Source: Neoconidiobolus thromboides FSU 785 (taxonomy: Eukaryota; Fungi; Entomophthoromycota). Taken from it: a stretch of DNA of 37,153 bases. The DNA is taken from assembly GCA_025603075.1 (NCBI GenBank), contig MU626447.1, positions 1 through 37,153 of the forward strand, written 5' to 3'. Below, piece by piece: positions 5,148 through 33,090 of the stretch. Each line of letters opens with the position of its first letter. The stretch's first letter is position 1. Made by a program: the position numbers and the translations under genes. The notes beneath the pieces are model-generated. The model was not told the DNA's origin. It ran no database searches and saw only the letters and a list, made by a program, of their open reading frames with translations.

Positions 5148-5560
5148 CTAATATTTAGCACACCTTTTACACTTTCCCTCCTCTATACACTTTACGTGAC
5201 TCAAATGGCCACATGGAAATACTATTACTTTTTCCCTATCCTCATTCCCATCCTCTTGCTCTCCTCTCCTTTCCACAGTAACTTTGAACCCACATTTAAC
5301 ACATCTTGGAGCAAAAGCTCTCAAACCTTTAACTCGATTTTTAAATTCTAATTTCAATACTTTAAAACAATCTTTAGCTACAATTTGTTTGGTTATTTGT
5401 AACATCTTTTTTTCATTTGAACAAGTATTAATTACAGATATCAATAAATCTTGAAATTCATTTAAAATAGCATTAGAAGTAGAATTTGATAAAGTCTCAT
5501 TTTTTGGTATTGATTCCAATAATTTAGTTAATAATTTAGGTACTGATAATTTAGTATTGA

Positions 5561-5591
<31 letters not shown>

Positions 5592-8500
5592 TCCCATTGA
5601 TGGATTAATGATTATAGTAAATAGATCTTGTATTAATTGTTGAATTATCAATTTGCATTCTTCTTTCATTTGTTTTTCAAATTCCGTTATCTCTTGAGTT
5701 TCATATATCTTTTGATTAGCCATTAATAAACATGAAATTAATTGATAATTTAACTCTAAACTTAATTCCATATTATTATCATTGAGTAAATTCACTTGAG
5801 ATCGATCACATAATCCCATACCAATAGCTGTCATTGTTTGAATTTTCATTAACTCAGATTCTGTTTTGTTTTTGATTTCGAATTTGGATTGTTTTTCTAC
5901 TTTTAGAGTATCTTGTTTCTCTCTATTACTTTTCAATAAGATTTCAATTGATTCAAATGATAGCTTTATAACTTTTAATATTTCTTCCATTGCTTCCATT
6001 AACTTTCCTTGAAGTTCCAATAAATAAACAATTCCATTTATAATCTTATATTTCTTTACAATTTCCATCATCTCATTAATAATTTTTTCATTACAATTGA
6101 ATTTCAAATAATTAATTACTTGATTACTATTAAATTGACATAATAAATTTAAATAATTTAATTTCAATTCATTATTAAATTCATATTCTTCATTAACCAA
6201 TTCCTTTAAATAATTATATTGTAACTCAGGTTCTTTATCTAGTAAAGGAATGACTTCGAATTCATTATCTTTGTACCAAAGTTGAATAATATTTTTAGTT
6301 TGTTTAGGATCAATTTTAGTTAATTGAATAAAATTTAATTCAATTTGATATTTAAATTCCTTCCATTTTTCGTCTTTTAATAGTGCATATGCTTTAATTA
6401 AAATTTCAAATATATCTTTGAACAATTCTTTATCTAATAAACAAACTAAAAACATATTCTTATAATCTTCTTCTTTTTCATAAACCCATTTTAATACCTT
6501 AAAAAAGCTAGCATTCAATAATATCTCTTTATCTCTTGGTTGATATATTTTAATCAAATTTAACATAACTTGTTGTCTTTCAATAAATGTAATATTAAAA
6601 TCTCTATCATTGATATTAGTTAATTCCATAAATATTTTATCCAAAATATTGAATTCTAATTTGATCTTTTGATTTACCGCTAATTTAATAAAAAATTCCA
6701 TCAATTTATATCGATTTTTTCCTATTAATTGAATCTTTTCATTTTCCCATAAACATTGTAAAAAGGGGTTTGTTAATTCTTGAAATAAATTCACATTGAA
6801 TTTCAATTCTAAATTATTAACACTTTGTTCTAAATTATTTAATATGTCTAATAATCCTTTACTATCTAACCAACATAAAAATTTAAAATATGGATACTCG
6901 ACACTCTCCTCTTCCTTACATAGTCCGTCTACTTTTGGTAATTTTATCTCTTTATCATCACCCCAACACATTTTATTTTGACTTAGAATCCATTTAGATA
7001 TTTGTTGAACTGCCAATTCATGAGATTGAGGGGACAAAGGTAACAAGGTGGGAAAGGATTTACCTTTAGTAATTATAATTAAATAATCTAATAATTTATT
7101 AAATTGTAATTGATTTTGATTTAATTGAATATTATTATTTAATTCTTCATTCATTATAATTTCTAAATTAAACTTATTACTATTATTTGAATTGTTTTGT
7201 TGTTGTTGTACTTCTAATTGAACTAGTAATTCTTTGATTGGTGTAATAAAATCTAACATAGCTGTAGAATATAAAAATAATAAACCATCTAATAATTGAT
7301 ATTGTTTACAAATCTTGGTGCATAAATCTAAATCTAATTTTAATGGATTTAAATGAAATAATATAGATTCTATTCGACTTATGTAATTCTTTTCTTTAGA
7401 ATAACAAATCAACCATTCTTTAATAAAATCCATTGGTAATTCTTCCAGAAAATCTATAATTATTGGGGTTGGAAACATAACATAAGGTTCAATAGCTAAA
7501 TATAAATATAAATTTAAGTTCATTAATTTGAGCTTTTCATAAATATTAATGAATAATAAATCTAATTCTCCTAATTCAAAACATGCTTGTACTACTGCTT
7601 TACAAAAGGCATCGACTTCTAACAAGTAATCTTTTCCTTCTTGTCTATTGCTTCCCCATTTTAATGTAAGGTGATTTAATGAAGCTAATAATAATGCTGA
7701 TATTTTATTTTTCATGATTTTTTTCCTTAAATTGATATTCTCAGATAACATTGAAAAGTAATAAATGGAACCTTCTTTTAAATAATGAGATGCTAATAAA
7801 ATAGCTTCAATAGCTTCTCCTTTATTAATTAAATTCATTACATGATCTGACCAACTTAATGGTAATCCAATTGTAAAATTCAAATTTCCTAACAAAAATA
7901 ATTTATTTTTATAACTTGTTAACCCATATTTATAATCTGGAATTATTTCATAATAATGTTGATCATTGTTATTATTATTGTTATTTGAATTAGTTAAATT
8001 AAATTCCTTCTTAGGATAATTTAATATTGGCTGATATTGACTTAATGAACCAATTGTTGTTGAATTATTTTTATTTTGAATATCTAATAAATGTAAGATT
8101 TCTCTTTGATCTAGTATTAATAAATTTCGATGATTAATCCAATTTAAACTTAATATAGAATAGTCACAATGAATTTCATTTAATTTGATGATGTCGATTA
8201 AATTATTATTATTATTCTCATTATTTAAACTAACTTTTAATATTATTAATACATTATTAAAACTAACAGCTAACAATGGATCATGTAATATTCCATCTAC
8301 TTTACTACTTGAATAAAATTTAATCATCGCATTTAATTGATTATTATTATTCTCTAATTCCATATCCGTTAAATTATATTTAAATTTCAAACTGTTTATT
8401 ATTTCTTTCTTAGTAATTGTATAAATGATTTCCGTTTTAGGTTTTAATCTCATAACAATCACTTCTTTATAACTCAAAATGGCCACTAAATTCATATCTT

Positions 8501-9903
8501 CCATACTTTTATTCAATCCAGTATATGATAATGTTTGCATATCTACTAATACGTCCTCAATACTTTTACTTTTACTTTTATTAATATAAATTAACTTTGA
8601 TTTACTACTCATGCCCATAATACCAGTTGATATATGATGATAAAATACATTGCCCATTTCATCTGCTGATAGAAACCTTTTAGATTTTCCTAGAAATTGA
8701 ACATTTCTAATTTGATTTCCTTTAATATGTCCTAATTTCTTAATACTCAATAAACTTTTTTTCTTTTCCAATATTGGTAATATTGTTGTTATGATTTGTC
8801 CTTTAATTAAATCCCAAATCGCTATTAATCCTTGACTATAACCTACTAATAGCCAATCACCATCTTTGGAAATATCTAAACTGGTAATACTACCATGTTC
8901 TAAAGCTAATAAAGTAAATTAATAAAATATATTAAATTAAATTCTTTTTTTAAAATATTAATTAATTTCTTACCAACTGCTGTATTCCCCAAAACAAATT
9001 TTAATTTTTGATGGAAATCAAACACAACTAATAAACCTTTCGAAGTAGCAAATACAATCCATTTGTTGACATAAAATAATAATGGTCTACCTAAACTTTC
9101 AATTGTCTGTTCATTAAATAATTGTTTAGTAATATGTGTTAATTGAATCCATTGAATCATACTATCTTCTTCATTATCTAACATTAATTCTTTATTTAAT
9201 TCCAATAAACTTTGAATTATTAAATTTTCATTTTCATTCATTGAATAGTTTGTCATATCATCTCGAGTATAAGTCATCGTTGTCATTGTGGGCGATAAAG
9301 GACTTAAGATCTATTATTAAAATAATATTAAAAAAATTCAAAATAATTAGGATGATTTAACTCACCCCTTTAATTGATTGAGAATAGTTCGAATCTAAAT
9401 CCTCTTGATATTCTATATCAATATCAAATGCTTCTTCAGCATTTAATATAGTATCTAAAATTAAATCTTTACCTAAATAATAATAATAAACTCAATTTGT
9501 TAAATAACTTGAAATCAAAATTACCTCCTTTAACAAACTCTTGGTACAAACTAACTTCCATTTCAATCCTTTCCAGTAATTCCCATCCTTTTTGTCTTGT
9601 CACTTCATCAAATCCAAATTTCCCACTTTCATCTAATTTTAATCTCAAACTCCTCATTATCAATTCTAATTCCTTGATATGCTCTAATAATACGCTATCG
9701 GTTACATCTGCAAGAAACTCTTCTTTTATGCACCAATAATCAAATTTTTTTTTATATTGTAATAATAATTGAGAAGTTAATCGTTGATTAGATTCACTTT
9801 GTTGAGTGAAAAAGTGTAAATTCTTAGAAGAAGAAGGTTTAAGCCCATTAGAACGTGGATGGGGAGAGATAGAAGTGGCATTGGTATATATATTGTCAAG
9901 CAT
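5148..9903 (-). CDS. VPS8: Vacuolar protein sorting 8 (CORVET subunit); 4 exons (9903-9525, 9472-9366, 9310-8974, ~8905-5148)
   Basis: WD40-like N-terminal region (IVFATSKGLLVVFDFHQKLKFVLG, GSITSLDISKDGDWLLVGYSQGLIAIWDL, FLSADEMGNVFYH), Vps8 core (YLAIEPYV...IESILFHLNPLKLDLDLCTKICKQYQLLDGLLFLY...DFITPIKEL), alpha-solenoid, and C-terminal RING (CVKC...FPCGHLSHVKC...CKRC). Confidence 0.9.
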
Positions 9904-10737: not shown

Positions 10738-12044
10738 ATGTTTGAGTTATCTTCAGAATATAGTAATCTTGATGGTTGGATTGAGCAATTAACTGAGTGT
10801 AAACCGTTAGCTGAATCAGATGTTAAAAAATTATGTGAAATTGTAAATCTATTTTTTTCTATATTTTCTATTTTAAAATAATAACGACCAGCATCTTATT
10901 TACTTATCTTTTGATCTTAATTAATAGAACCTATTGACTAATCCCCTTCTTTTTTCGATTTTTTTAGGCGCGTGAAATATTAAGCCTTGAATCCAATGTG
11001 CAACCAGTTAAATGTCCCGTCACTGTGTGCGGTGATATCCATGGACAATTCCATGATTTAGCTGAGTTATTTAAAATTGGAGGTAATGCACCAGATACAA
11101 ATTACTTATTTATGGGGGATTATGTCGATCGTGGTTATCATAGTGTTGAAACAGTCACTTTATTGATGGCTTATAAATGCAGATATAAAGAAAGAATTAC
11201 TATATTAAGAGGGAATCATGAATCCAGACAAATTACTCAAGTTTATGGGTTTTATGATGAATGTTTGAGAAAATATGGTAACGCTAATGTATGGAAAATG
11301 TTTACTGATTTATTCGACTATTTACCTTTAACTGCTTTAATTGAAAATCAAGTAAGTTGTGTTAAATAATTTAATATTTAATTTAATTTAATATTATAAT
11401 TAGGTATTTTGTTTACATGGTGGATTATCACCAGTTATTGATAATTTAGATCAAATCCGATCTTTAGATCGTATTCAAGAAGTACCTCATGAAGGACCTA
11501 TGTGTGATTTATTATGGTCAGATCCAGAGGATCGTACTGGATGGGGTATTTCTCCCCGTGGTGCTGGTTATACTTTTGGTCAAGATATTTCAGAAGCGTT
11601 TAATCATACCAATGGTTTAACTTTAATTGCTAGAGCTCATCAATTGGTTATGGAAGTAAGTTAAGTTATTTTAGTTATAAAAAGAAGAAAGAAGAATATT
11701 ATTATGAAAATCAACTAAAGTTAGGACAAAATTTATTAATGTTTATTTATTTATTTATTTATTAGGGTTATAATTGGTCCCAAGAAGGTAATGTAGTGAC
11801 TATATTTTCAGCACCTAATTATTGTTATCGTTGCGGCAATCAAGCTGCAATTATGGAATTAGATGAAAATTTAAAACATTCTTTGTAAGTTTATTTTTAT
11901 TTTTTAAAACTTTTTCGAACTATATTATAAATTCCATGGTTATTAATTGTATACTTTAAATATTTAATTAGCCTCCAATATGACCCTGCTCCTCGTAAAG
12001 GCGAACCTCAAGTTACTCGTCGTACTCCCGATTATTTCTTATAA
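10738..12044 (+). CDS. PPH21: Serine/threonine protein phosphatase 2A catalytic subunit; 5 exons (10738-10842, 10968-11351, 11404-11655, 11766-11884, 11972-12044)
   Basis: PPP motifs GDIHGQ, GDYVDRG, RGNHE, HGGLSP and [11 protein letters not shown], plus the PP2A-specific C-terminus RRTPDYFL*. Confidence 0.97.
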
Positions 12045-13345: not shown

Positions 13346-14811
13346 TATTTTATATTCTATTTTATATTCTATTTTACTTACTTGAAATCCAATAAACCAG
13401 ATGGATTTGTAAGCATCTCCAACCAATATGAAATTTTTAATAGTAGTAATTGTGTTCACATAAATTTGAACATCTAAAAACGCAACACCATCTAAAGAAT
13501 CCCCTTCTTTTAAAGATCGGATAATTACCTAAAATAAGTAAATAAAAAATAAATAAATAAATATATTATATTATATTATATTATATTATATTAACAAAAT
13601 AATTTTTTAATATTAAATATTACCTTACTTCCTATACAAGTAACTAAATATCCATTTAATCCATGAATAGCTGATACAGTACCTTTGACTTCTTCCATAA
13701 TTAATAATTTTAATTTATGATTAGTAAATGGATTATCAATCTCTGGTACTACTTCAATAATATCAAACAAATAAATCCTTCCTTTAATACTTGTTTCTTC
13801 TCCATGATAAAAAGAAGTAGTAATAGCAACAAATGTTTTTCTAGCTTGAAATTGAGTATCCATATCTACGATTTTACAATCTGTAACATGTTCATCTAAT
13901 TCAAATTTATAATTATCGATGAATTCCCATTTAACCGGCGAAATTAATTCTAAGCTAAACTGTTCTACTTTGGGCATAATTGGTGGAGGGAATAAAGAAT
14001 AAGGATTAGGTTCTTCATTTTCATTTAGAGATTTCAAATAATTTTCATAATCTTTTGTATAATCTCTTAAGTTGGATTGAATTAATACATATTGTTTTGA
14101 TATGGAATGATATTCTATAAAATGAGGTGTTGTTGATATTTCTTTTTTTATTAATCCCCATTCTAATTCAAAGTTATAATTTAAATCCATTTGATTTAGT
14201 TTCAATTCATTATTTTCATTAAAATAAATTAATCCATGTTCACAATCACGATGATGAAATGGTATTATACTTTGCAATTTATTATCTAATTCAATATTAT
14301 ATGTTTGTAAAATATTATGTTCATTATTAATCACCATTTTACTCTTTTCTCCTGAAATTAATATACCTGAATAATTATTAATATTCTCAAAATATCTTAA
14401 TTTAGAATAAATTGTATCTGCAATTTCATCATCATTTTCGATTTTCCTTCTCTTATTTTGATTATTTGTTTTCTTTTTTTCTTCTTTTTCTGATTGATTA
14501 TTATTGTTATTAGTCATTTGCTTATAACTAACATCCTTTAATAAAACTCTATTAAATTTAATAGCTAATCGATTGTTATTCAAATTTTCCTTATTATTAA
14601 TAATATTATAATCTAATAATATTTCATAAATTATAATTTCTTCAATGTCATTTAATAATACTAAATAAATATTATTAAATACTTTATCTTGTCCAAAATG
14701 ATAAATCCCAATTTCTTGAATTTTTGTCTCATAATTTTCAATTTCTTGTAAATTGTTATTATTGTTATTATTATCTTCTACTATTTCTTCAATAAATCCA
14801 TTTTGATATTG

Positions 14812-14853
<42 letters not shown>

Positions 14854-17800
14854 TTGATGTTGAATATTAATTTGATTTCTACCATGACTATTAATTAAAT
14901 TAAAATGTTTTTCTTCATCAGCTAAATCATCTGAAAACAACCAATTAAAATTATCCATTTTCTTAATAGAATAAACCATAGTTAATTTTGGTAATAAATA
15001 AATCTCCAAGTCACCCGAAACTCTTAATAATACTAATAGATATTTAGTTTCACTTTTTTTCTTTAACTTTTTAAATTTTAACTCATTTTCTCTCTCTTCT
15101 TTATCTTCTAAATTTAAATTTTCTTCTTGTAATAAGTCCTTTTCTTTTTCCCCATACAAATCTTCATCATTTTCAAAATTTTCGCTCACTTCTTCGATTG
15201 TTTCCATAATAACCTCTTTACTTTTATAAATTTCATTTAAATCTTCCATTTCATTGCCAAATTTAAATCCATTTCGTTCATCTTTATAAATAAAACTGCT
15301 TGCAATTTTAGCAATCTAAATAAAACAAAATTGTATTAAATAATTAACTCATAATTGCTTGATTATTATCTTAATGCTTACATTAATTTCTTCTTCATTA
15401 TCTTCAATTGAAATAATATCAATCTTATTTAATTGTTTTTGAATTTCAAATAAACTAATACTATCATCTCCTCTTCTTAATAATAAATAAGGTTCAGTAA
15501 CTAAAGCCCAAGTAACCCATTGAGATGTTCTTCTATTTGTTGCTAATGTTCGACTAAATAATTGTTTACCATCTAATAAAAGAAATATCGATTAATATTA
15601 ATACAATACATAGAGTATATATGTTATCATTATTATTGTTCTATTTGTTTTCTTACCTCCATCTACAATTCTAACACCAGTTTTGTAAACTTGAATATAA
15701 GCATTCAATTGTTTTAATGTACCAATATAAATTGTTGGTCCAGTTGTAAAAAAACTAGTATTTTCTACTTGCTGTAACTCATTTCCTGCTTTTAAAATCT
15801 AAATTAAATTAAATTAAATAAAGATGAGTAAAAAGGGCAAATATAAATATAGATAGTTTGATATTTATAATATTATATTAGCATTATGTTAATATTATGA
15901 TGAATTAAACTTACCAACGTTGAATTTTGTTTGGATATAATTAGAAATTGATCAAATAGATGCGAATTTAATTTTAAACTCCATAAATTATCACAATTTT
16001 CCATTGAATAGGTTAATAATTGTTTAAATCTTAAATTTTTCTATATAAAAAAAGAAATTAAAATAAAAAGAAACTAAAATAAATTAATAAAAATACATGA
16101 AGTATTGAAATAGAGCCATAAGGTTCATGTCCTGAACAAATTACTAAATCATTATGTTTTAATTTAGTAGTAGGATTATCTTGTTGCTAATAATTACACA
16201 AATAATTAATAAAATAAAAATAATAAATAGAATAAAATAATTTAATATTCAACTTACTTCATATTCCCAATTATATTCAGAAGAACCAAAGCATAGTTTA
16301 GTAATTGGTGATATATTAATAAAAGTATGTAATAATTCCATTTTATAATGTTGACTTTGTACATTAATTAATGGGTTTTTCTTTTTCAAATTTTTATTCT
16401 TCTTTTTCTTCTCATTCTCGTTTGAGTCCTCATTTTCAATTTCATTTTCCTCCTGCTGATAAAAATCAGGAATAATATCAAATACATCCGATTGATAAGG
16501 GGGTAACATATTTTCTTCTAAATTAACTTTAAGCAATATTGAATCATTAAACAAAGAACCAAGAAATAAAGTGTATTGATTTAATTTTGTAATATTATTA
16601 GTTAATATAGAATTCCCAATTAACATCAAATTAACAAAATTAATCCTCTTTCCATCTAATTTCCAATATAAAATAGCCAATTTCCCATTTTTTAAACTCA
16701 TTAATATTTCTTGAGAATTAATAAAACAATAATGACTTTTTTCTAATGTTATTAATAAACTCATATTTTTATGATATTCAATATCTGATACTCTTGACGA
16801 TAATGTATTAATACTTATATTATATTGATTACTTCCCTGATTTCCATAGATAATAGAAGTACTATTAATAATCAAAAACCCATATGTTGGTTTAGGTAAA
16901 CTTATCAAATATAAACTATCACTTGGTAAATTTTCCATTCGATAAATGATTGGATAAGTTTGATGACTTATATCTAAAGATAATACCATTATACTTATGT
17001 TATCTGGTTTATATGGATTTCTATAAAAGTCATCAATATTACAAATTATTCTATATTATTATTATTATTATTATTACCCGCTATAAGTTACACTTGATTC
17101 ATACAATACAGCTAACGTAGGTGAAAAATAACCATGTAAAAAAGTAGTGTCAATAACTGATTTTAATTTCGGCTCTACTTTAGCTAAATCTATAATAAAA
17201 CTTGGAAGATAAGGTTGTTGACTAAAGAATAATAGAATAATTAATATATTGATTAAAATAGCATTATAATATGTATAATATTATTAGCTTACATGTTTTG
17301 TTCCATTTCGGTTAAAAATAATTCTTCTTTTTGTCTCATTGGTAAGATGGCTAATTGTGTATCATAAAAATTTAAGGCTACACAACGTTGCCCTGGATCC
17401 ACCCGAATTACACTTTTATAATGATTGTTGATAAAATTTTTCTATGAAATTTAGTTAATTCTTATCTATATTTTTAATTTGTTAATAAAAACTTACCTTC
17501 AATTCATCACGTTCATAATAATGAATAGAAACAGTAATAAATTTATTATAATTTAAATGATATTCTAAAATGGATAACTAAATAATTATGTTATTATTTT
17601 TATTATTATTTTTATTATTTTTATTATTAAATATTACTTTAGCATCTTTGAAAGAAATTAATAAATAATCCAGATTATTGGAGTTAGTTGGTATTTTGAT
17701 TGTATCTATTGAGTCTACTTCACCAACTAATATAGTTTGATAGATTAACTTTACTTTTTCAATACCCTAATAAAATAAATAAAATAAAGAATAAAAATAT

Positions 17801-23999: not shown

Positions 24000-24018
24000 A
24001 ACCGAGCTTAAAAAATAA
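24000..24018 (+). promoter_or_regulatory. Candidate conserved upstream element AACCGAGCTT(R)AAAA(A)TAA of PH paralog 1
   Basis: A near-identical sequence lies at a similar distance upstream of paralog 2 (-211 vs -235 from ATG). Function is inferred, not shown. Confidence 0.4.
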
Positions 24019-24210
24019 TGGAATTACCCTCTATAGACATTTCTTGGTGCCCCATTTCTCCGCAGTTTGATTAGAATTTATTTGGCTTTATAAACCACAC
24101 CAAATAAACAAAAGTTTTCTTTTTTATCTTTCTTCAACTCATTAATTTGATCCATTTTCTATCTTTTAACTAATCCAGTAGAAACTAATTTTAATTTTAT
24201 TATTTAAGCG

Positions 24211-27136
24211 ATGTCATCTAATCAAGAAACCGCTCAACCTTCTGAGTCTACACTCGCTCCTGAGCCTATTACCATCTCTGAAGACTTAGAACAAACCCTA
24301 CCACAGGAACCTATTGTTGAAGCAGTAGAAAAAGAGTCAGAAGCTAAAGAAGCGCTAACTGAAGAAGCACCAGTTGAAGAAACCCAAGCTGAAGCCAAAC
24401 CAGAAGAAAAGGTAGAGCCTTCCATTATAGAAGAAGGTATTGTACATAAAAGGGGTCCTCTCCCTCTTCGTTTATGGCAGAAACGTATAATGACTTTTAC
24501 TGTTAGCAAGCAGAATTTTTCATTATATGATCTTCGTATTGTATATCGTAAAAACGTCAAGAAATCTCAAGCTCCTAAAGAAGAGTTTGAGAAGATTAAC
24601 AAACTCCTTTTTGAAACTATTGCTACCGCCACTGTAAACGCTAGTGATATTATTGTTTATTATAAACCAAATGTCAAAGATATTCCTCAAGGTTTAATCA
24701 ACCTTAAGCAAGTTCAATCTATAGAAGCAGCCCCAAAAGTCAAACCATTTGCTTTTTTGGTTAAAACTGAAGCCCGTGACTATATATTTAATGCACCTAA
24801 CAAGAAAGAGTTGGATTCTTGGATTCATACTATTTCTTCTAAGCTTGATAATGAAATTCCTGACTACTCTGATACCCAAGGTTATAAGTTCAGTTATGAG
24901 CATCTTGGTAAGTATATATTTTAAGTTAAGTTAAACTAATATATCTAATAATACTTTAGTTAACCGTAAAGGATTTACACCACCTGCTGCCTCAAACAAT
25001 CAAGATGAAGAAGTATTCTCTGCTTCTGAAGCCGAATTTGTAGGTGATGAAGTTGTACAAAAATCTAGCGAGGAGCCAGCACAGCCAGAGCAGGCTAATG
25101 CTGAGCCTCAACCCATCGCTACAGCTACTGAAGGATCTCAGCCTTCTGGAAAATCTTTCCTCAATGAAGTATTAGGAATCTTCTACCAAAAGAGTTCTGA
25201 GCATGATGCTGCCAATGGTGCTAAAGTAAATCCAGAAGCTGAGCCTAAAGTTGAAGAGGTAGTTGCAAAATCTGAAGCTGAATCCGCTCCCGTCACTGAA
25301 AATACTGAGGAAATAGCAGCTGAGAATGTTGAAGCTAAACCTGAAGCTGAAGCAGTAGTCGAATCAAATTCTAATCCGGTTGACCAAACTCCTAAGTCTC
25401 CTCGTACAAAGACATTCTCTTTCTCTGGTTTCCAAGGAAGTAAGTTCTTGTCCCTTTTCGGAAAATCCAAAGAAGAGCAAAAAGAAGAATCCAAAGTTGA
25501 ACCTGCTGCTGAAAATGCTGAACAAGAACCCGAAACAAAAGAGATTGTACCAGAAGTTGAGGTTAAACAAGAAACTGCTGAAACCGCAGAAAACACTGAA
25601 GCTCCAGTTGAAGCTGCCCAAGAAACTCCAGCTCATATAGAAGAGGAAGCCAGTGCTGCCGCTGCTCCAGCTGCAGAAGAAACCAAAGGAAAACCTGCCA
25701 ACTTTTTGAGCCGTGTATTTTCTTTAGCTAAACCTAAGAACGCAAATGCTGGCAAACCTGAAGAAGCCGCCGGAGCCAAATCTGAAGAAGCACCTAAAGA
25801 AGTCGAAACTGAAGCCCCTGTTGCTACTGAAGAAGCTCAAGTGGAAGCTATTCCAGAAGCTATTCCAGAAGCTATTCCAGAGACTGCTGAAACTGAAGAG
25901 ACTAAAGTCGAAACTGAAGAAATAGCTGCATCTGCACAACCTGAAGTTGTTGAATCTGTTGCTGAAAAGAAAGGAAACTTTTTTTCAAGAATCTTATCAA
26001 AGCGTAAACCTAATGGCGCTGCTCCAGCTCTAGTTGATGAAGTAAAGGAAACACCTATTCCAGAAGCTACTGAAGAAATTAGCGAACCTATCCCAGAAAT
26101 ACAAGCTACTGAGGAAAATAAAGAGGATTTACCTGAAATTGAGCCAGAAGCTAAAGAAGTAGTTGAAGAAACAATTGTCATTGCCGCTTCTGAACCGGTA
26201 CCAGAACTTGAACCAAAGACTGTTGAGGAAGTTCCTGCCATTGAAGCTCTTACTGAAGCACCTGTTGAAAGCAAACCAGAGGAGGTTGCTGAAGTAAAAG
26301 AAGAGGAAGTAGCCTTACCTGAAGCAGTTGAAAAAGTTGAAGCTCCTGTTTCAGAACTTCAAGAAGATACACGCCCATTTTTAGTCCGTGTTTTATCTGG
26401 AAAGCGCAAAGAAAAGCCAGTTCCAGAAACCAAGGAACCTGAAGTAACAGGGGAAGTACCAGTTGAAGTTGTTCCTGTAGAGGAAGTTAGAGAAGTTGAA
26501 GAGCCTGTTGCTGCTGAACCAATTAAAGAGGTTGAAGCTGAAGCCGAAGCCGAAGCTGCCTCAGCTACTGCTCAAGAAGCTACTCCAGCCCGTCAAGCTT
26601 CCTTAATTGCACGTATTGGAGGTTATGCTTACTCTGCAGTTTCGCCCACCTCTGGTGCTATCCCAGAAGAGTTAAATGAAGAAATCTCTGAACATTATAA
26701 AGCTCTTATTGAAGAAGTCGAAGCCGAACATTACGGATTTGTCTTTAAGCAATCTTACCTCTTACATTCTAATAATCACCGCTTTGCAATCCTTGGTAAA
26801 GAGGGTTTGTTTGTTTATTACCACGATGCCCAAGCCCCATCTGAAGGTAAAAAGATTGTAATCAACGATTCTGTCACTATATTGCCATATGGTGAAAATG
26901 CTTTCATCATCAAAACATCTAGCCAAAGCTATACTTTCTCCGCCCATACCGCTGAAGATGCTGAGAAATGGATCAAAGCACTTTCTAAGTTTGGAAAACA
27001 AGCTGATGTCGAAGTTGTTCCAGAAATTCAACCTGAAGTAGTTGCTGCAGTAACTGCTGAAGAAGAAGCACCAATTACGATTGCTACTGAAGAAGTTGCT
27101 ACTACCGAAGAATCCAAAGTCACTACTGAAGCCTAA
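24211..27136 (+). CDS. PH-domain protein, paralog 1 (~957 aa): N-terminal PH with insertion (Meu6/PH_6-like), Glu/Ala/Pro-rich disordered region, C-terminal PH; exons 24211-24907 and 24960-27136
   Basis: N-PH: EEGIVHKRG...LWQKRIMTF...PQGLINLKQV...AFLVKTEARDYIFNAPNKKELDSWIHTI. A 52-bp phase-1 intron; I translated exon 2 and it is open from 24960 into ORF 25448-27136. C-PH: GFVFKQSYLLHSNNHRFAIL...AFIIKTSSQSYTFSAHTAEDAEKWIKAL. Confidence 0.88.
25844..25879 (+). repeat. Coding 12-bp tandem repeat x3, (EAIP)3
   Basis: GAAGCTATTCCA, three exact copies. Confidence 0.85.
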
Positions 27137-27365
27137 TTTAGTTTGTTAATTCGATCAACCAGTTGATGTTTGGTTTTTAATTCATATCATCTTGATATTT
27201 TATTCTTATTTACCTCTTAATATTATATTCATCATTTTAATAAAGCTAATTACAATATATATATTTTGGAAATGGAGTTATCTATAGTTTTTTATAATAT
27301 GACTAATTAAAATTGGAGAGTTTTTAGGATTTAAGTTGAGATTTTGCGAAATTCCTTCACAATAT

Positions 27366-27462
27366 GGGGATGTATTTTTGTATTTGAGAATTTACTAATA
27401 ATTTTTCTATTCAAATAGCGCTTAAAAGATGGAAAAAATAATGAAGCCAAAAAAACCTCCCC
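27366..27462 (+). mobile_element. MITE-like element copy 6 (97 bp)
   Basis: GGGGATGTATTTTT...AAAAAAACCTCCCC. ATAT at 27362-27365 and 27463-27466. Confidence 0.87.
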
Positions 27463-27921
27463 ATATATAAGCTAACTGAATATTATAGGTTTTAATCAGT
27501 TAAATTTTTAAAATAATGTTTTTAAGATATTTAAAAATTAACAACTTTGAAATTTCATAATAGTTTTGAAACATTACTGATTAACTTTTTAAATTAGAAT
27601 TTATTTTTTAATTTAAATAATACAATAACTTTTGATTAAAATGGCATTAACAGACCATTTTAACTAAATATACTATAATGTATTTTAATATTAAAGAGCT
27701 ATAATTGTAATTCTAAAGTTATAGCATGTTAATTAATATTAATCTTTGTAATATAGAAATAATGCTAGAGAATAACTTTGAACAATCTCTTAAATGGCCA
27801 TAATATTTATAAGAAATTTATAAAATAAGCTAAATAAAAAGGGAAATAGTAAAAGTATGATGAAATCTTAACAAGAATCACATGTGTTTTGTTTCAAGCT
27901 GACAATTACCAAATTAATTTA

Positions 27922-27939
27922 AACCGAGCTTGAAAATAA
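27922..27939 (+). promoter_or_regulatory. Candidate conserved upstream element of PH paralog 2
   Basis: AACCGAGCTTGAAAATAA, matching 24000-24018. Confidence 0.4.
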
Positions 27940-28156
27940 GGCGTATTGAGAGAAATGGTTACTGGTATTCTTAGAAAGCTGTTCATATTAAAAATAAGAA
28001 CACAATTTCTTTATCGAATAATTGTTTCAACAAATAATATTCATTGATTTCGAAAAATTGCATTTTTAGCTTAAATAACTTGTTTTTAAATTGATAACCA
28101 AAAGGCACTAAATCCTACCTTTGTTTTTTTACTTAATAAACTTAATTTACTTTATT

Positions 28157-30302
28157 ATGGCTCTTACTAGCAACAAAGTAGTACCTTTAATTAATACAGA
28201 AAAGTCCGATATTTCCAATAATATTAGCCTTGAAGCTGCTAAAACTGCTGTTGTTCTTGATTCTGCTTTAGAAGGAAGATCTCCAGAAGTACCAGAGAAA
28301 GATGTAACTGAAGCGCCAGCTCTCCCAGTAAAGGATGACCTTAATATTTCAGCGAATCCAAATAGAACAAAAAGTGTAAATATAGCTTCAACGCAGAAGA
28401 TACTGAAATCTAAAGATGGTGCTATCTCTAAACGTGGTGGATTCCCCCTTTACTTGTGGCATAAGCGTTCTATTTCTCTCAGAGCAAGTAACAACCCATA
28501 TTCTCTATATGACCTTCGCACATTTTACAACAGTAAAGTTGTTAATATCCAAGGTTCCAAAGCTGCATTTGAAAAATCAAATGCTCAATTATTTGATACC
28601 ATTGCAACTGCTACTGTCGATCCTTCTAGAGTTATTTCTTATTTCAAACCTGAAGATAATAGCACTCCTCGTAGCTTGATTGATATCAAAGATATTGTAT
28701 CAATTGAACCAAAGTATAATATTAAGAAAGAAGCCTTTAGTATTATTACCAAGGATAAGAATGAGTTAATCTTTAGTACTAGATCCTTAGAAGAATCTAA
28801 GTCTTGGATTAATGAAATAAAAGAAAGGATGTCACATAAGCCTGTTGACCTATCCAAAAATGAGACATACAAAGCTAACTATCAACATTTAGGTAATTTA
28901 TTTATAACTAAACATTTAATAGCTAAAGTTTGTTTTTAGTTGGAAGAAAGGGATTCCAAAACCCAGTAGCAGTTAAAAAGGAAGCTAGCCCAGTACCAAA
29001 GATAGAAGTTGAAGCTATCAAAAACACCAAAATTGAAGTACTAAGCGATGATAAAAACAACCTAGTAGATAATGATGAACAACCTAGTGTTCCAAGAAAG
29101 TCGTTCTCACATGAGGTAATGGCCACTTTAAATTCAAAGCTTGGAAAGGAAGAGCCCAAAAGAGTACCAATTCCAGTTGATGCTGAGCCTCAGTCCAACC
29201 CTGCTAGTGCTAATTCTACTCAAATCGGAACTGGGACGGATCTTAATTTTCAAACGGCCCTTTCTCAACCAGAAGCTGTTGGCTCTACTAACTTGACTAA
29301 TACGGAGATTTTATTAGATGAACAGGCTGCTGTTCAGTCTACAGTTTTTGAGAATGAAGTAGAAACTAAACAGATTCAACAACAGGCTCCTAAATCTATT
29401 GAAGTAGAGGAAATTAAATCAGACATTGATAATCATTCTGGGATTCCGGCTGAGCCTCTAGTCTTAGGAAATGATTCTAATAAGGTTGTTTCAGAACACC
29501 AAGATGCTTCTATTTCTTCATTAAAGGCTAAAGATGAGATTGCTCATAAAGGTAAATAGTTATATATATTTGTATAGAGTTAATTAAAAATATAGAATCC
29601 GAAGTTAAGGAAGAACAATTAACTGATTCACCATTAAAAAATGAACATATCATAGAAACTATCAACAAATCTATCAGTGATGTACAAGGAGATGAACAGC
29701 CTAAGAACGACTCAGATTCTACAACATTACCTAGAACCCCTGAATCAAAAGATTTAGCGATTATTGAAACCGATACTATTGCTATCAATGAATTGGCTAA
29801 AACTGAAGAAATTAAACCTATTCAAGATTCTGTAAAAGAAGTTAGTAGTAATATTGAAGCTATTAAAGAGGAAGCTGTAAGTTCAAATCCAGACGTTGAT
29901 TCTCAGAAATTATCTGAACCTTTAATGGAAATCGAGGTTGTTGGCGATTCAAAAGTTAGTGAATATGCTCCAGAGACCCCAAAAAAGGAAGGTGAGACCC
30001 CAGAAGTCCCAGTAAAACAAGAAGAGGCCCCAGAAGTTCCAGTAAAACAAGAAGAGGCCCCAGAAGTTCCAGTAAAGCAAGAAGAGGCCCCAGAAGTTCC
30101 AGTAAAACAAGAAAAGACTCCAGAAGTTCCAGTAAAACAAGAAAAGGCTCCAGAAGTGCCTAAGAAGGAAGCTAATAACATTAAAGCATTAAAAGACCAT
30201 GAAAATTTAGAGGTAAAAAAGTCACTACCAAATCTAAAGGATGGTAAAGGTTCGGTAAGTTCTAGCAAGAGCAAGAAGAAAAAGAAGGGAAAGAAACATT
30301 AA
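28157..30302 (+). CDS. PH-domain protein, paralog 2 (~684 aa): N-terminal PH, acidic Pro-rich tail, polybasic C-terminus, no second PH; exons 28157-28892, 28940-29551, 29596-30302
   Basis: PH: DGAISKRGGFPLYLWHKR...YSLYDLR...IATATVD...SLIDIKDI...AFSII...FSTRSLEESKSWINEI. Intron 1 is at the same HLG|V position as in paralogs 1 and 3. Both introns (47 and 44 bp) join the ORF-track segments in frame. Ends SKSKKKKKGKKH*. Confidence 0.87.
30000..30167 (+). repeat. Coding 30-bp minisatellite, 5 full copies plus a partial copy, (PEVPVKQE[E/K][A/T])n
   Basis: Unit CCAGAAGTTCCAGTAAAACAAGAAGAGGCC, with 1-3 substitutions between copies. Confidence 0.92.
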
Positions 30303-30567
30303 TGTTGAATGCGGGCATTTCCTAATTTAGTAAATTACTACTTAATATTAAATTTTACCTTAATATCACAACTTAATTCTTCAATTAATATAATAAAAGC
30401 CCCCCCTCCTTAATTTTAAATATTTAAATATTTTAGTTTTAAGTAATTTGATATGTTTAAAGTCTTTAATAAAATATTTTCGCATTTTTGGATCAAAAGT
30501 TAAAAATAATGTTCACATAATTTATGGTTTATTTAGATAGGATACAATTGATAAAAACTGAAAATAT

Positions 30568-33090
30568 TTAATTAACTACAGCGATCTCCTCTACTCCTTC
30601 ATTTAATACTTCTACAGCCTTCTCTGGCTCTTTAGCTTCTTGCTTACTTTCAATCACATCTTGGATAACTTTTACCCAAAGATCCCTCTCCTCAGCAAGT
30701 TTAGTCAAGAAGGTATAGGCTTGCCCTTGAGATTTAATATTGAATGAAAGTTCATCCACAGCATCAATTTGAGAATCCTTATCAAGGATAATTTTCTTAC
30801 CTTCAGATACTACTGCACCTGAACGATAGTATATAAATTCTCCTTCTTTATTTAAGATAGCAAAGCGTTGGTTGTTAGAATGGAGTAAATAGGATTGCTT
30901 AGTAATATATCCAGATCTTATTGCTTCTTTGCTTAACTCTTGATAATGCTCATTCAACTCTTCTTCTTCTTCAATAGCGGCTGGGTATGCTGGAACAACA
31001 GCAGAATAAGCAAGCTCTCCAATACGAGATATCAAGGAGGGTTGACGAGCTGGGCCAGATGGAGCCTCTTCAGTGCTTTGAGGCTCTTTCTCAGTTTCAA
31101 CTTCAGTCACAGCCACAGCCTCAGGTTCTTCAGAAATTACTTCAGCTTCGAATGGAGCTTCAGTATTTTCTACATCAAGTACTGGTGGTTCATCATTATT
31201 TCCCTCTTCTACATTTTCCTCAGCAGGCAAAACGGGCTCTTCTTGAGGTTTAGGAGAAGTTGGTGAGCCAAATAAGGATTTACGCTTTCCTGATAAAACT
31301 CTAACGATAAATGGACGTTTGTCTGTTTCAGGCTCTTCAGGTTCAGAAGTTACTTCAACGGGCTCAGTTACTTCCTCTTTGGTTACCTCTTCTAATGGAG
31401 TTTCAACTGGCTCTTCAGCTTTTGGTGAGGTGGGCTCCATAGTAGACTTGCGTCTTCCAGATAAAATTCTTCTAATAAGGTTAGGTTCTTCCTTTGGTTC
31501 CTCTTTTGGGTCTTCTTTTATTTCAGAAGTTTCAGGCTCTTCAGTTTCTACAGGTGTTTCGGCTTCAGTTTCAACCTCAGGATCAGATTCTTTGCTTACA
31601 GGAACAGGCTCAATGGTTGATTTACGCTTTCCCGATAAAAGTCTAACCAAGAAAGGACGTGCTTCTGGCTCTTCAACTTGAGCTTCTTCAACAATATCTT
31701 CAGTAGCTTCTTCAACAGCTGTTTCAGCAAGTTGTTCTTGTTCAACTTCTAGTTCAGTTTCAATAGGGGCTACTTCAACAGGAGCTACCTCGATTTTTGA
31801 TTTACGCTTCCCAGAGAGAATCCTTGCTAAAAATGGACGTTTATCCTCTTCATCTTCGGTTTCTGGGATTACAGATTCAGGTACGTCTGATTGAGTCTCA
31901 CCTTCTACGGGCGCATCTGCTTGTGCTTCAGCTTCAACTGGGATTTCTGGTGCTATAAGGGCATTTGGAGTCTCAATTTTAGATTTACGGTTTCCAGATA
32001 AAAGTCTAACTAAGAAAGGACGTGTTTCTTCATTAGTAGGCTCTGGTTGAGATTCTGACTCTGGCTGTAAAGTGATTTCTTCTGCCTGTTCTTGAGCTTC
32101 TACTTCATTTACAGGAGAGGATTCTTCTGGATTATGAGCTTGTGCTTGTGTTTCCTCATCAGCTTTAGCTGTAGATTCTTTATTCTCATCTTTTCCAAAC
32201 ATAGCCAAAATACCGGTTTGAATCCCAAGAAGAGAAAATGCCTGAGACTTAGGTCTAGAAGGCTCTTCTTCAGTTGTTTCAGCCTGTGCTTCATGTTGGT
32301 CCTCTGCTTCAGGAACTTCACTTTCTTTAGCCTCTTCGGCTTCTTCGGTCTTTTCGATGTTTTCAACCGTATCGGATGTAGCTTCAGCTGAAGGCACTTC
32401 GTCAGAAACAAACTCTGCTTCAGAAGCAGAAAAAACTTCTTCCTCATTTTGATTACTAGCTGGGGGAAAGAAACCTTTACGATTAACTAAATAAAGTTAG
32501 ATATAATTGTATAAATGTATAAATAATGGTTTACCCAAATGGTCATATGAAAATTTAAAGGCTTCAGTATCATCATAGTCAAACATTTCACTGTTCAATC
32601 TATTTTGTATTGAAGTAACCCATAAATCAGTTTCATCTTTACTTGGAGCAGAAAAGACATAATCCCGATTTTTAGAATGGATGATGAAAGCGTTAGATTT
32701 TATACGAGGTGCTCTTTCGACTGATTTAACATGCTTTAAATTAATTAAGCCCTGGGGCAAGTCCTTTGCATTCACTTTATAATATGCTAAAATAGCGTTA
32801 GTATTGACAGTGGCGGTAGCTAAAGTTTCAAATAGGTCTTTATTAGCCTTTTCAAATTCAGCGCGATTAGACTGGGATTTCTTTACATTTTTCTTATATA
32901 CAGTTCTTAATTGGTAGAGAGAAAACCCTTGATGAGAGCTGGGAAAAGCTAAGTAGCGTTTTTGCCATAATCTTAATGGGAAAGGACCTCGTTTGGATAT
33001 GATACCTTCCTCGATCAAAGTAGGTTCAGGAATGGCCTCGATAGGAGCTTGGTTATGTGCTTCATTTGAAGTATCGTTATTTGATGACAT
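30568..33090 (-). CDS. PH-domain protein, paralog 3 (~824 aa): N-terminal PH, acidic region with five RPFLxRxLSGKRKS motifs, C-terminal PH; exons 33090-32535 and 32486-30568
   Basis: N-PH: EEGIISKRGPFPLRLWQKRYLAF...PQGLINLKHV...DYVFSAPSKDETDLWVTSI. A 48-bp phase-1 intron at HLG|V. C-PH: SGYITKQSYLLHSNNQRFAILNKEG...YTFLTKLAEERDLWVKVI. Closest to paralog 1. Confidence 0.88.

Follow-up and report, generated by a model that had tools for sequence, protein, structure and literature searches.

Five copies of a basic-hydrophobic short linear motif in the acidic linker of a two-PH-domain protein from Neoconidiobolus thromboides, candidate membrane anchors with conserved putative basophilic-kinase sites

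In a 37,153-nucleotide stretch of the entomophthoromycotan fungus Neoconidiobolus thromboides FSU 785 (contig MU626447.1 of assembly GCA_025603075.1, positions 1 to 37,153; hereafter the window), three paralogous genes with PH domains form a cluster, and the third of them, paralog 3 on the minus strand, encodes a peptide of the form RPFLxRxLSGKRKS that recurs five times at almost equal distances. What is this array, how did it arise, and what might it do? A sequence-only reading of the same DNA had described the copies and proposed a multivalent electrostatic switch whose spacing serves as a ruler. Translation of the minus strand from 32484 returned exactly the same peptides, starting at 32022, 31839, 31659, 31485 and 31317 with start-to-start distances of 61, 60, 58 and 56 codons, and a repeat search on the DNA returned one five-member family with 61-nt cores spaced 183, 180, 174 and 168 nt apart. 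All five represent one short linear motif, carried by a disordered acidic linker that separates two PH-fold domains, and they lie at these positions:

31981..32022, minus strand: motif copy 1, RPFLVRLLSGNRKS, residues 341-354 of the full protein
31798..31839, minus strand: motif copy 2, RPFLARILSGKRKS, residues 402-415; predicted AlphaFold2 helix at exon-2 residues 218-223
31618..31659, minus strand: motif copy 3, RPFLVRLLSGKRKS, residues 462-475; predicted AlphaFold2 helix at residues 279-284 of exon 2
31444..31485, minus strand: motif copy 4, PNLIRRILSGRRKS, residues 520-533; the most divergent copy
31276..31317, minus strand: motif copy 5, RPFIVRVLSGKRKS, residues 576-589; predicted AlphaFold2 helix at residues 392-397 of exon 2, predicted local distance difference test (pLDDT) score of the block 63

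In all six frames of the window, a relaxed regular expression matched these five copies and three further peptides in paralog 1 and nothing else, and this restriction to two related genes argues that the motif is real and not a product of chance. The three paralog 1 peptides (the sequence-only reading had likewise listed three, among them NFFSRILSKRK and one at 26372) are as follows:

25700..25738, plus strand: motif-like copy NFLSRVFSLAKPK, found by the regular expression
25976..26008, plus strand: motif-like copy NFFSRILSKRK, found by the regular expression
26372..26410, plus strand: canonical copy RPFLVRVLSGKRK, positional orthologue of copy 5 in paralog 3

Tandem Repeats Finder did not detect the period of about 180 nt in paralog 3, because the spacers between the copies are too diverged.

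The paralog 3 reading frame is genuine coding sequence and the gene is expressed. It has two exons on the minus strand and an 824-aa product that starts MSSNND; the minus-strand open reading frame at 30568-32397 extends upstream in frame to 32484, and the parts of the gene are these:

32535..33090, minus strand: exon 1, with the start ATG at 33090 and an N-terminal PH domain (PH / PH_6 type by Pfam); covered by a contig over 32535-33084
32487..32534, minus strand: intron of 48 nt, GT..AG, phase 1; joint 32486|32535 present in contigs of three runs (X4, X5 and X6)
30568..32486, minus strand: exon 2, with the acidic disordered linker that carries the motif array, the C-terminal PH domain and the stop, from the translation and an RNA-type contig

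That contig, of 2452 nt from run X4 (its label as RNA is a guess), lies on 30585-32486 and 32535-33084 with exactly the 48-nt intron removed; the same joint occurs in the two further runs, which come from another study than X4. A poly(T) loose end at 30512 is compatible with a poly(A) site. Orthologues are continuous across the intron junction (...L-[VA]-[DE]-R-K-G-F... in our alignment A1), and it is because the spliced RNA-type contig covers the array and orthologues align through it that we regard the frame as coding. The public gene calls for this contig contain only an unspliced 197-aa exon-1 product (P0005) and nothing over exon 2, and exon 2, used as query in a protein search, found no match to itself. 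The truncated call leaves the linker and the second PH domain out of public protein sets, and the motif has therefore been hidden from proteome-wide searches.

The PH fold of both terminal domains is confirmed. The N-terminal domain scores over the Pfam cut-off with both PF00169 (41.4 bits) and PF15406 (34.5 bits), is of the PF15406/PF00169 type with an insertion after beta-2, and shares 51-52% identity with the related proteins P0001-P0004. Its C-terminal counterpart (30643..30912, minus strand; assigned from its predicted fold and sub-cut-off Pfam scores) reaches 22.5 bits with PH_3 and 18.6 bits with PH, both under cut-off, where the corresponding domain of paralog 1 is just over it; the predicted fold (AlphaFold2, pLDDT 82-91) superposes on solved PH domains with Z 11.4 over 88 aligned residues at a root-mean-square deviation of 2.5 (7yis_A). 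The sequence between the two domains is of a different nature. Exon 2 (638 aa) has a net charge of -96, from 159 Asp and Glu against 63 Lys and Arg; Glu makes up 24% of the linker and Pro 11%, and the only 11-residue windows of exon 2 with a net charge of at least +3 are the five motif copies. With a seven-sequence alignment as input, AlphaFold2 modelled the linker of paralog 3 at pLDDT below 50, with six-residue helices (FLxRLL) at copies 2, 3 and 5. The sequence-only reading had called the motif a short amphipathic helix plus a basic patch; the hydrophobic stretch between Pro and Gly and the basic patch that follows it are plainly there, and the helices are of low confidence and confined to those three copies. 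On the model, the motif is best described as a predicted two-turn hydrophobic helix delimited by Pro and Gly and followed by a basic tail of +3 to +4.

Whether the motif reaches beyond this genome bears directly on its meaning. A word-based protein search with the 609-aa open reading frame was dominated by low-complexity words, with two matches from 8000 candidates scored; of the searches restricted to regions, one gave two further relatives and another none. Together these searches returned proteins of Entomophthorales only (Entomophthora muscae, Massospora cicadina and two other sequences), and each of the four has one or two copies of [KR/Q]PF[LI]xRLLSG. In these orthologues, the copy that lies closest to the C-terminal PH domain aligns with copy 5 and with RPFLVRVLSGKRK of paralog 1, so that every Entomophthorales orthologue has a counterpart of copy 5 in the form [KR/Q]PFIKRLLSG (A1 columns 846-865), and the motif is kept among genera with only 37-52% overall identity. 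A motif absent from orthologues would have spoken against the earlier proposal; it is present in the Entomophthorales orthologues (one or two copies each) and in paralog 1 (three copies).

Since low-complexity words swamped the word search, a profile search was needed to see the family as a whole. Across 1.84 billion representatives it placed 16 proteins below 1e-30, all annotated as 'hypothetical' or 'PH domain-containing'. The named members belong to Zoopagomycota (Basidiobolus, Dimargaris, Tieghemiomyces and Dispira) and Mucoromycota (Ambispora, Diversispora, Calcarisporiella, Geosiphon, Rhizophagus and Lunasporangiospora), and none of the named top profile matches is from Dikarya. The full-length members all share one layout, in which an acidic linker with two to six basic-hydrophobic islands (at least three in most) lies between an N-terminal and a C-terminal PH domain; an island is defined by a criterion of our own, distinct from the BH-search algorithm, as a net charge of at least +3 and at least 3 hydrophobic residues per 11 residues. 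Because its N-terminal PH domain, the helix before the second PH domain together with that domain itself, and the acidic island-bearing linker all agree with this pattern, paralog 3 is, by its predicted architecture, a member of this uncharacterised PH-acidic linker-PH family of early-diverging fungi (Zoopagomycota/Mucoromycota). Four kinds of island are found repeatedly among the Zoopagomycota members (Φ, a hydrophobic residue):

Island A: [KR][KR]K[ST]ΦF
Island B: RxKTFxxPKFEGKxFSKxFKK
Islands C and D: for example PIQRTLTKLL and SFLKRLGT in Kickxellomycotina

Homologous, degenerate islands occur in Kickxellomycotina and Basidiobolus (SFLKRLGT and PIQRTLTKLL are again examples) and in Mucoromycota. 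The RPFL-type motif is the form that islands C and D take in Entomophthoromycotina, and in paralog 3 this form was amplified. One ancestral island type has been amplified to five copies there, and its acidic spacers decayed meanwhile. The motif gives a concrete, testable handle on an uncharacterised family that the profile search found only in Zoopagomycota and Mucoromycota.

Three further elements of the paralog 3 linker have counterparts in relatives:

32410..32484, minus strand: conserved acidic segment NRKGFFPPASNQNEEEVFSASEAEF at the start of the linker, with an EVFSASE core (alignments A1 and A2)
32191..32259, minus strand: degenerate island B, SRPKSQAFSLLGIQTGILAMFGK, counterpart of the RxKTFxxPKFEGKxFSKxFKK block of orthologues (A1)
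30997..31050, minus strand: conserved helix ARQPSLISRIGELAYSAV just before the C-terminal PH domain (A1 and A2; AlphaFold2 helix 484-496)

The linker of paralog 3 opens RKGF...EVFSASEAE, in keeping with the family pattern. No block of the linker is better conserved in Entomophthorales and paralog 1 than the EVFSASE core, with F18, S19, A20, S21, E22 and E24 invariant in A2, and variants of it occur in Kickxellomycotina, Basidiobolus and Mucoromycota members. At the degenerate island B, AlphaFold2 predicts a helix at exon-2 residues 85-97.

Internal repeats are common in disordered regions, and paralog 2 of the same cluster carries a recent 30-nt minisatellite, so that the array might be supposed to be a neutral remnant of internal duplication with no function of its own. 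The codons say otherwise. Among the copies, 47 of the 102 identical-residue codon pairs (15-codon block) use different codons, and over 14 motif codons with all five copies pooled, the proportions of synonymous (pS) and nonsynonymous (pN) differences are 0.56 and 0.19 for a dN/dS of 0.21, which falls to 0.13 when the divergent copy 4 is left out; even the closest pair, copies 1 and 3, has a dS of 0.34. The spacers are acidic and nearly unalignable: only 3 of 10 pairs scored above shuffles of the same composition (p<0.05), and they did so largely because of residues right after the motif. Both the claim that differing synonymous sites point to selection on the peptide and the description of the spacers as acidic and dissimilar are therefore upheld. 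Low dN/dS, diverged synonymous sites and spacers beyond alignment together mean that the motif copies are old duplicates, each kept by purifying selection. The same values (dN/dS 0.13-0.21 with near-saturated synonymous sites), and the retention of the same motif among genera at 37-52% identity, leave a functionless remnant with next to no credibility.

If the peptide is under selection, which of its residues carry the function? The sequence-only reading had pointed to two putative phosphorylation sites, a CaMK/AMPK-type hydrophobic-x-R-x-x-S and a PKA-type K/R-R-x-S, and the two fared differently. All five copies contain the first, Φ-x-R-x-x-S (with a hydrophobic residue at -5, Arg/Lys at -3 and Ser/Thr at 0), and its serine, within R-Φ-L-S-G, is found in every canonical RPF-type copy of every species examined; in the family at large, 44 of the 75 islands contain Φ-x-[RK]-x-x-[ST], where shuffling within islands leads one to expect 13, counts that are not phylogenetically independent. 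The second, [KR]-R-x-S, can be seen in four of five copies (copy 1 has N at -3), and it lies outside the conserved motif core, P-F-Φ-x-R-Φ-L-S-G followed by basic residues: the KRKS serine is missing in most orthologous copies and in the last copy of paralog 1. On this pattern of loss, the CaMK/AMPK-type site appears to be the conserved one and the PKA-type site lineage-specific.

These properties together brought us to a reading modelled on MARCKS, in which the motif copies would be basic-hydrophobic membrane anchors, switchable by phosphorylation, that add avidity to the PH domains; we favour it tentatively, at somewhat less than an even chance. Each copy, a two-turn hydrophobic helix (P-FLxRLLS-G) with a basic tail of +3 to +4, would partition into the interface of a membrane rich in acidic lipid, and five weak, additive anchors would raise the avidity of phosphoinositide-binding PH domains, while the acidic spacers would be kept off the membrane by repulsion or else, in solution, would mask the basic islands. 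Phosphorylation of the invariant Φ-x-R-x-x-S serine, and of the KRKS serine where present, would weaken binding and release the anchors. In MARCKS itself, the electrostatic switch consists of acidic-lipid binding that is reversed by phosphorylation or calmodulin (PMC4602126, PMC10881156). The likeness lies in an acidic, Ala/Glu/Pro-rich unfolded protein with a basic-hydrophobic segment and serines in a basophilic-kinase context, for which the same logic is proposed, and family island B (RxKTFxxPKFEGKxFSKxFKK; TKTFSFSGFQGSKF in paralog 1) recalls the Phe/Ser/Lys pattern of the effector domain. The differences are considerable. The one effector domain of MARCKS spans about 25 residues, among them about 13 basic ones, 5 Phe and 4 Ser, whereas paralog 3 has several islands of +4 to +6 each; the paralog 3 linker is flanked by two PH domains, in a fungal host and with no detectable homology to MARCKS; and the protein, which starts MSSNND, has no N-terminal Gly for myristoylation and no Pfam MARCKS match at E<=1. 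We rejected membership in the MARCKS family on the missing myristoylation signal, the missing +13 effector domain and the missing profile match, and the resemblance would be one of functional analogy only.

Two other systems work by comparable means. The basic-hydrophobic (BH) sites described by Brzeska and Korn, for example in Dictyostelium myosin-1 tails, are short unstructured basic-hydrophobic segments that bind acidic lipids non-specifically and cooperate with PH domains (PMC6960411); such sites are usually single, whereas paralog 3 has an array of motifs inside an acidic linker. In fungal polarity proteins such as Schizosaccharomyces pombe Pom1, a disordered basic-hydrophobic region is reported to bind the plasma membrane and to be released by multisite phosphorylation (PMC6555594); regions of this type belong to a different family and have neither PH domains nor a discrete repeated motif. 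The proposed mechanism would hold little surprise, and the value of the locus lies in a clean motif array in an unstudied family and in the correction of an annotation. If the MARCKS-like reading is true, fungi would have reached a multivalent electrostatic switch coupled to PH domains independently, and the family would offer a natural system for the study of avidity, charge patterning and phosphorylation in the membrane binding of disordered proteins.

Several observations tell against membrane anchoring. The motifs are modelled with low confidence (45-63) by AlphaFold2, which leaves copies 1 and 4 non-helical. The helical hydrophobic moment is moderate, at 0.23-0.46 over 14 residues and 0.39-0.69 over the 9-residue core. 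A motif copy has a charge of +4 to +5, one Phe and no aromatic cluster, compared with +13 and five Phe in the MARCKS effector domain, so that one copy by itself would be a weak binder. The conserved serine might have a structural role in capping the helix, and not accept phosphate. Finally, a short helix delimited by Pro and Gly with a ΦxxΦL core would suit a protein-docking motif equally well, and this last point opens the most substantial of the alternatives, to which we assign a clearly smaller though still appreciable probability: each copy, as a short helix, would insert into a groove on a partner (calmodulin, for instance) or, once phosphorylated, would be bound by a 14-3-3 dimer, and five copies would give multivalent recruitment. 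The sharp helix limits (invariant Pro before, Gly after) and the ΦxxΦL core do resemble helix-in-groove motifs, calmodulin is a common binding partner of basic amphiphilic peptides, the MARCKS effector domain among them (PMC4602126), and an invariant Ser with Arg at -3 is the minimal context for basophilic kinases and for 14-3-3-type binding. Yet the peptide-motif repeat families of Pfam (IQ, WH2, RPEL) gave no match at E<=1, an IQ-type Q/RG pattern is missing, none of the ten serines has Pro at +2, as a canonical 14-3-3 mode I site would require, and a 28-aa motif peptide compared with Protein Data Bank sequences found no match in solved structures. The islands of the family are, moreover, highly variable and keep only their basic-hydrophobic character, which fits a physicochemical target better than a shaped groove. 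A search of the ESM Atlas with the motif array gave no usable match.

More specific candidates were rejected on pattern or profile evidence. For 14-3-3 mode I (R-S-x-pS-x-P), the +2 residues are N, K or R after the first Ser and I/I/I/M/F after the second. IQ and classical nuclear localization signal readings of the motif failed likewise. WH2 and RPEL arrays are also tandem series of short helix-plus-basic peptides, and the 'RP...L' start is RPEL-like and the helix-Gly-basic order WH2-like, both superficially; these readings were set aside after no Pfam match at E<=1 was obtained and the LKK[TV] and RPxxxEL cores were found in 0 of 5 copies. Linkers in WH2 arrays are much shorter than the roughly 45 acidic residues between paralog 3 copies, and actin-motif families beyond WH2 and RPEL likewise gave no Pfam match at E<=1. 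Pleckstrin also has two PH domains with basophilic Ser/Thr sites in a basic stretch between them (RKST-type), and its activity is governed by phosphorylation in that stretch. Between its PH domains, however, pleckstrin has a DEP domain, a short linker and no repeated motif, compared with an acidic disordered linker of 475 residues in paralog 3, and membership was rejected since paralog 3 has no DEP match at E<=1 and its linker is predicted to be disordered.

The charge pattern of the linker admits another explanation, in which the islands act as stickers of a blocky polyampholyte and pair with acidic spacers, either within one molecule or on its neighbours, giving compaction, auto-inhibition or cortical condensates tuned by phosphorylation. 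Charge segregation is indeed strong, with islands of +4 to +6 set in acidic spacers in a linker of 24% Glu, and in several distant members the islands are fairly regular (90/91/91, 78/76/81 and 56/64/63/52/51). Against this, molecules with a net charge of -93 each are unlikely to form homotypic condensates unless a polycationic partner is present, and the regularity is not general, the nearest orthologues being irregular and the permutation test described below not significant; we consider this explanation improbable.

That leaves the spacing, which the sequence-only reading had taken to act as a ruler on a membrane or polymer. In paralog 3 the coefficient of variation (CV) of the spacing is 0.03, compared with a mean of 0.59 under random placement, and several other members reach a CV of 0.11 or less. 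Island spacings, in residues, are:

Paralog 3: 62/58/58/56
Paralog 1: 86/92/135
Nearest orthologues P0001, P0002 and P0004: 164/72, 107/43 and 139/49
Two Basidiobolus meristosporus paralogues (P0010 and P0011): 90/91/91 and 78/76/81
Ambispora: 56/64/63/52/51
Calcarisporiella: 69/58/62/67
P0036: 60/53/70/67/57

The proteins P0010, P0011, P0016, P0020 and P0036 show near-equal spacing within each protein although their island sequences differ, and in the two Basidiobolus paralogues all three spacers differ by similar amounts, a regularity that we leave unexplained. When spacers were permuted among family proteins, the uniformity of spacer length within proteins was not significant (p = 0.29-0.57), and we therefore make no claim of selected regularity. 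A ruler, with the spacing of about 60 residues selected to match a lattice (septin, actin, microtubule) or to fix the distance between anchors, would draw on the low CV of paralog 3 and of several others; it has to contend with a period and a copy number that differ among members (mean spacings 57-118 residues; one to five canonical motifs and two to six islands), with one or two copies in the orthologues and three in paralog 1, both of them unevenly spaced, and with disordered acidic spacers that fix no distance. The variation in copy number and spacing among orthologues leaves the ruler unsupported, and we judge it very unlikely. Tandem duplication accounts for the regularity of paralog 3. 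The footprint to be expected of that process is a unit of nearly constant length, here about 180 nt, whose spacers have decayed, and the near-constant spacing is thus best read as a by-product of duplication, a record of history and not a measuring device. We infer from the even spacing that amplification proceeded by tandem duplication of a unit of about 60 codons (about 180 nt); homology between the spacers is only marginal, so the duplication origin relies on the spacing and on the similarity of the motifs, not on alignable spacers.

A bolder proposal would join even spacing to membrane anchoring, with the family as an undescribed cortical or membrane scaffold in which an acidic 'brush' links the two PH domains and is held down by phospho-switchable basic-hydrophobic anchors at even intervals, the even spacing being selected. 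We regard this as speculative, with a rather small chance of being correct. If it were so, the spacing (59 residues here, 90/91/91 and 78/76/81 in Basidiobolus, and about 57-64 in three Mucoromycota-like members) would set a loop size, and loop size in turn would exert steric pressure or impose a lattice geometry on the membrane.

Other features of the linker and of the locus deserve mention. The acidic block after the first PH domain, [DE][DE]-Φ-F-S-[AG]-S-E-[AG]-E (32410-32484 on the minus strand, where it reads EVFSASEAEF; 24962-25040 on the plus strand in paralog 1), is shared by Entomophthorales and the two paralogs, and most other members have looser versions of it. It may resemble a VAP-binding motif of the FFAT-like or phospho-FFAT kind, or else an acidic CK2 cluster. 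Ahead of the second PH domain, the RQxSLxxRIGExAYSAV segment (30997-31050 on the minus strand; about 26578-26640 in paralog 1) is the most conserved linker element in Entomophthoromycotina members and P0014, is predicted to be helical at a pLDDT of about 56, and holds an R-Q-x-S basophilic site. Paralog 2 (P0006, 684 aa; 28157-30302, plus strand) has kept the N-terminal PH domain and has neither an RPFL-type motif nor a C-terminal PH domain; its minisatellite, of 30 nt at 29994-30157 with 5.5 copies and 94% matches, encodes PEVPVKQEEA repeats, and the protein ends KKKKKGKKH.

G+C content is 34-43% across the three-gene PH cluster (24000-33000) and 20-28% in its flanks, a rise due at least in part to linkers rich in Glu, Ala, Pro and Val. 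Among the neighbouring open reading frames, judged by eye, 5148-8771 (minus strand) presumably encodes a large RING-ended protein, 10998-11369 (plus strand) a PP2A-type phosphatase fragment and 13591-16989 (minus strand) a large beta-propeller-like protein with long Asn runs, and these neighbours are probably housekeeping genes. Runs X5 and X6 each contain two contig forms over 31006-31297 and 32007-32254, one identical to the window and the other with 18 substitutions and a 6-nt deletion (at 31104 and 32146), and this points to the presence of two alleles or haplotypes. The contigs over the motif array differ from the window at two positions only, 31368 and 31695, both in spacers.

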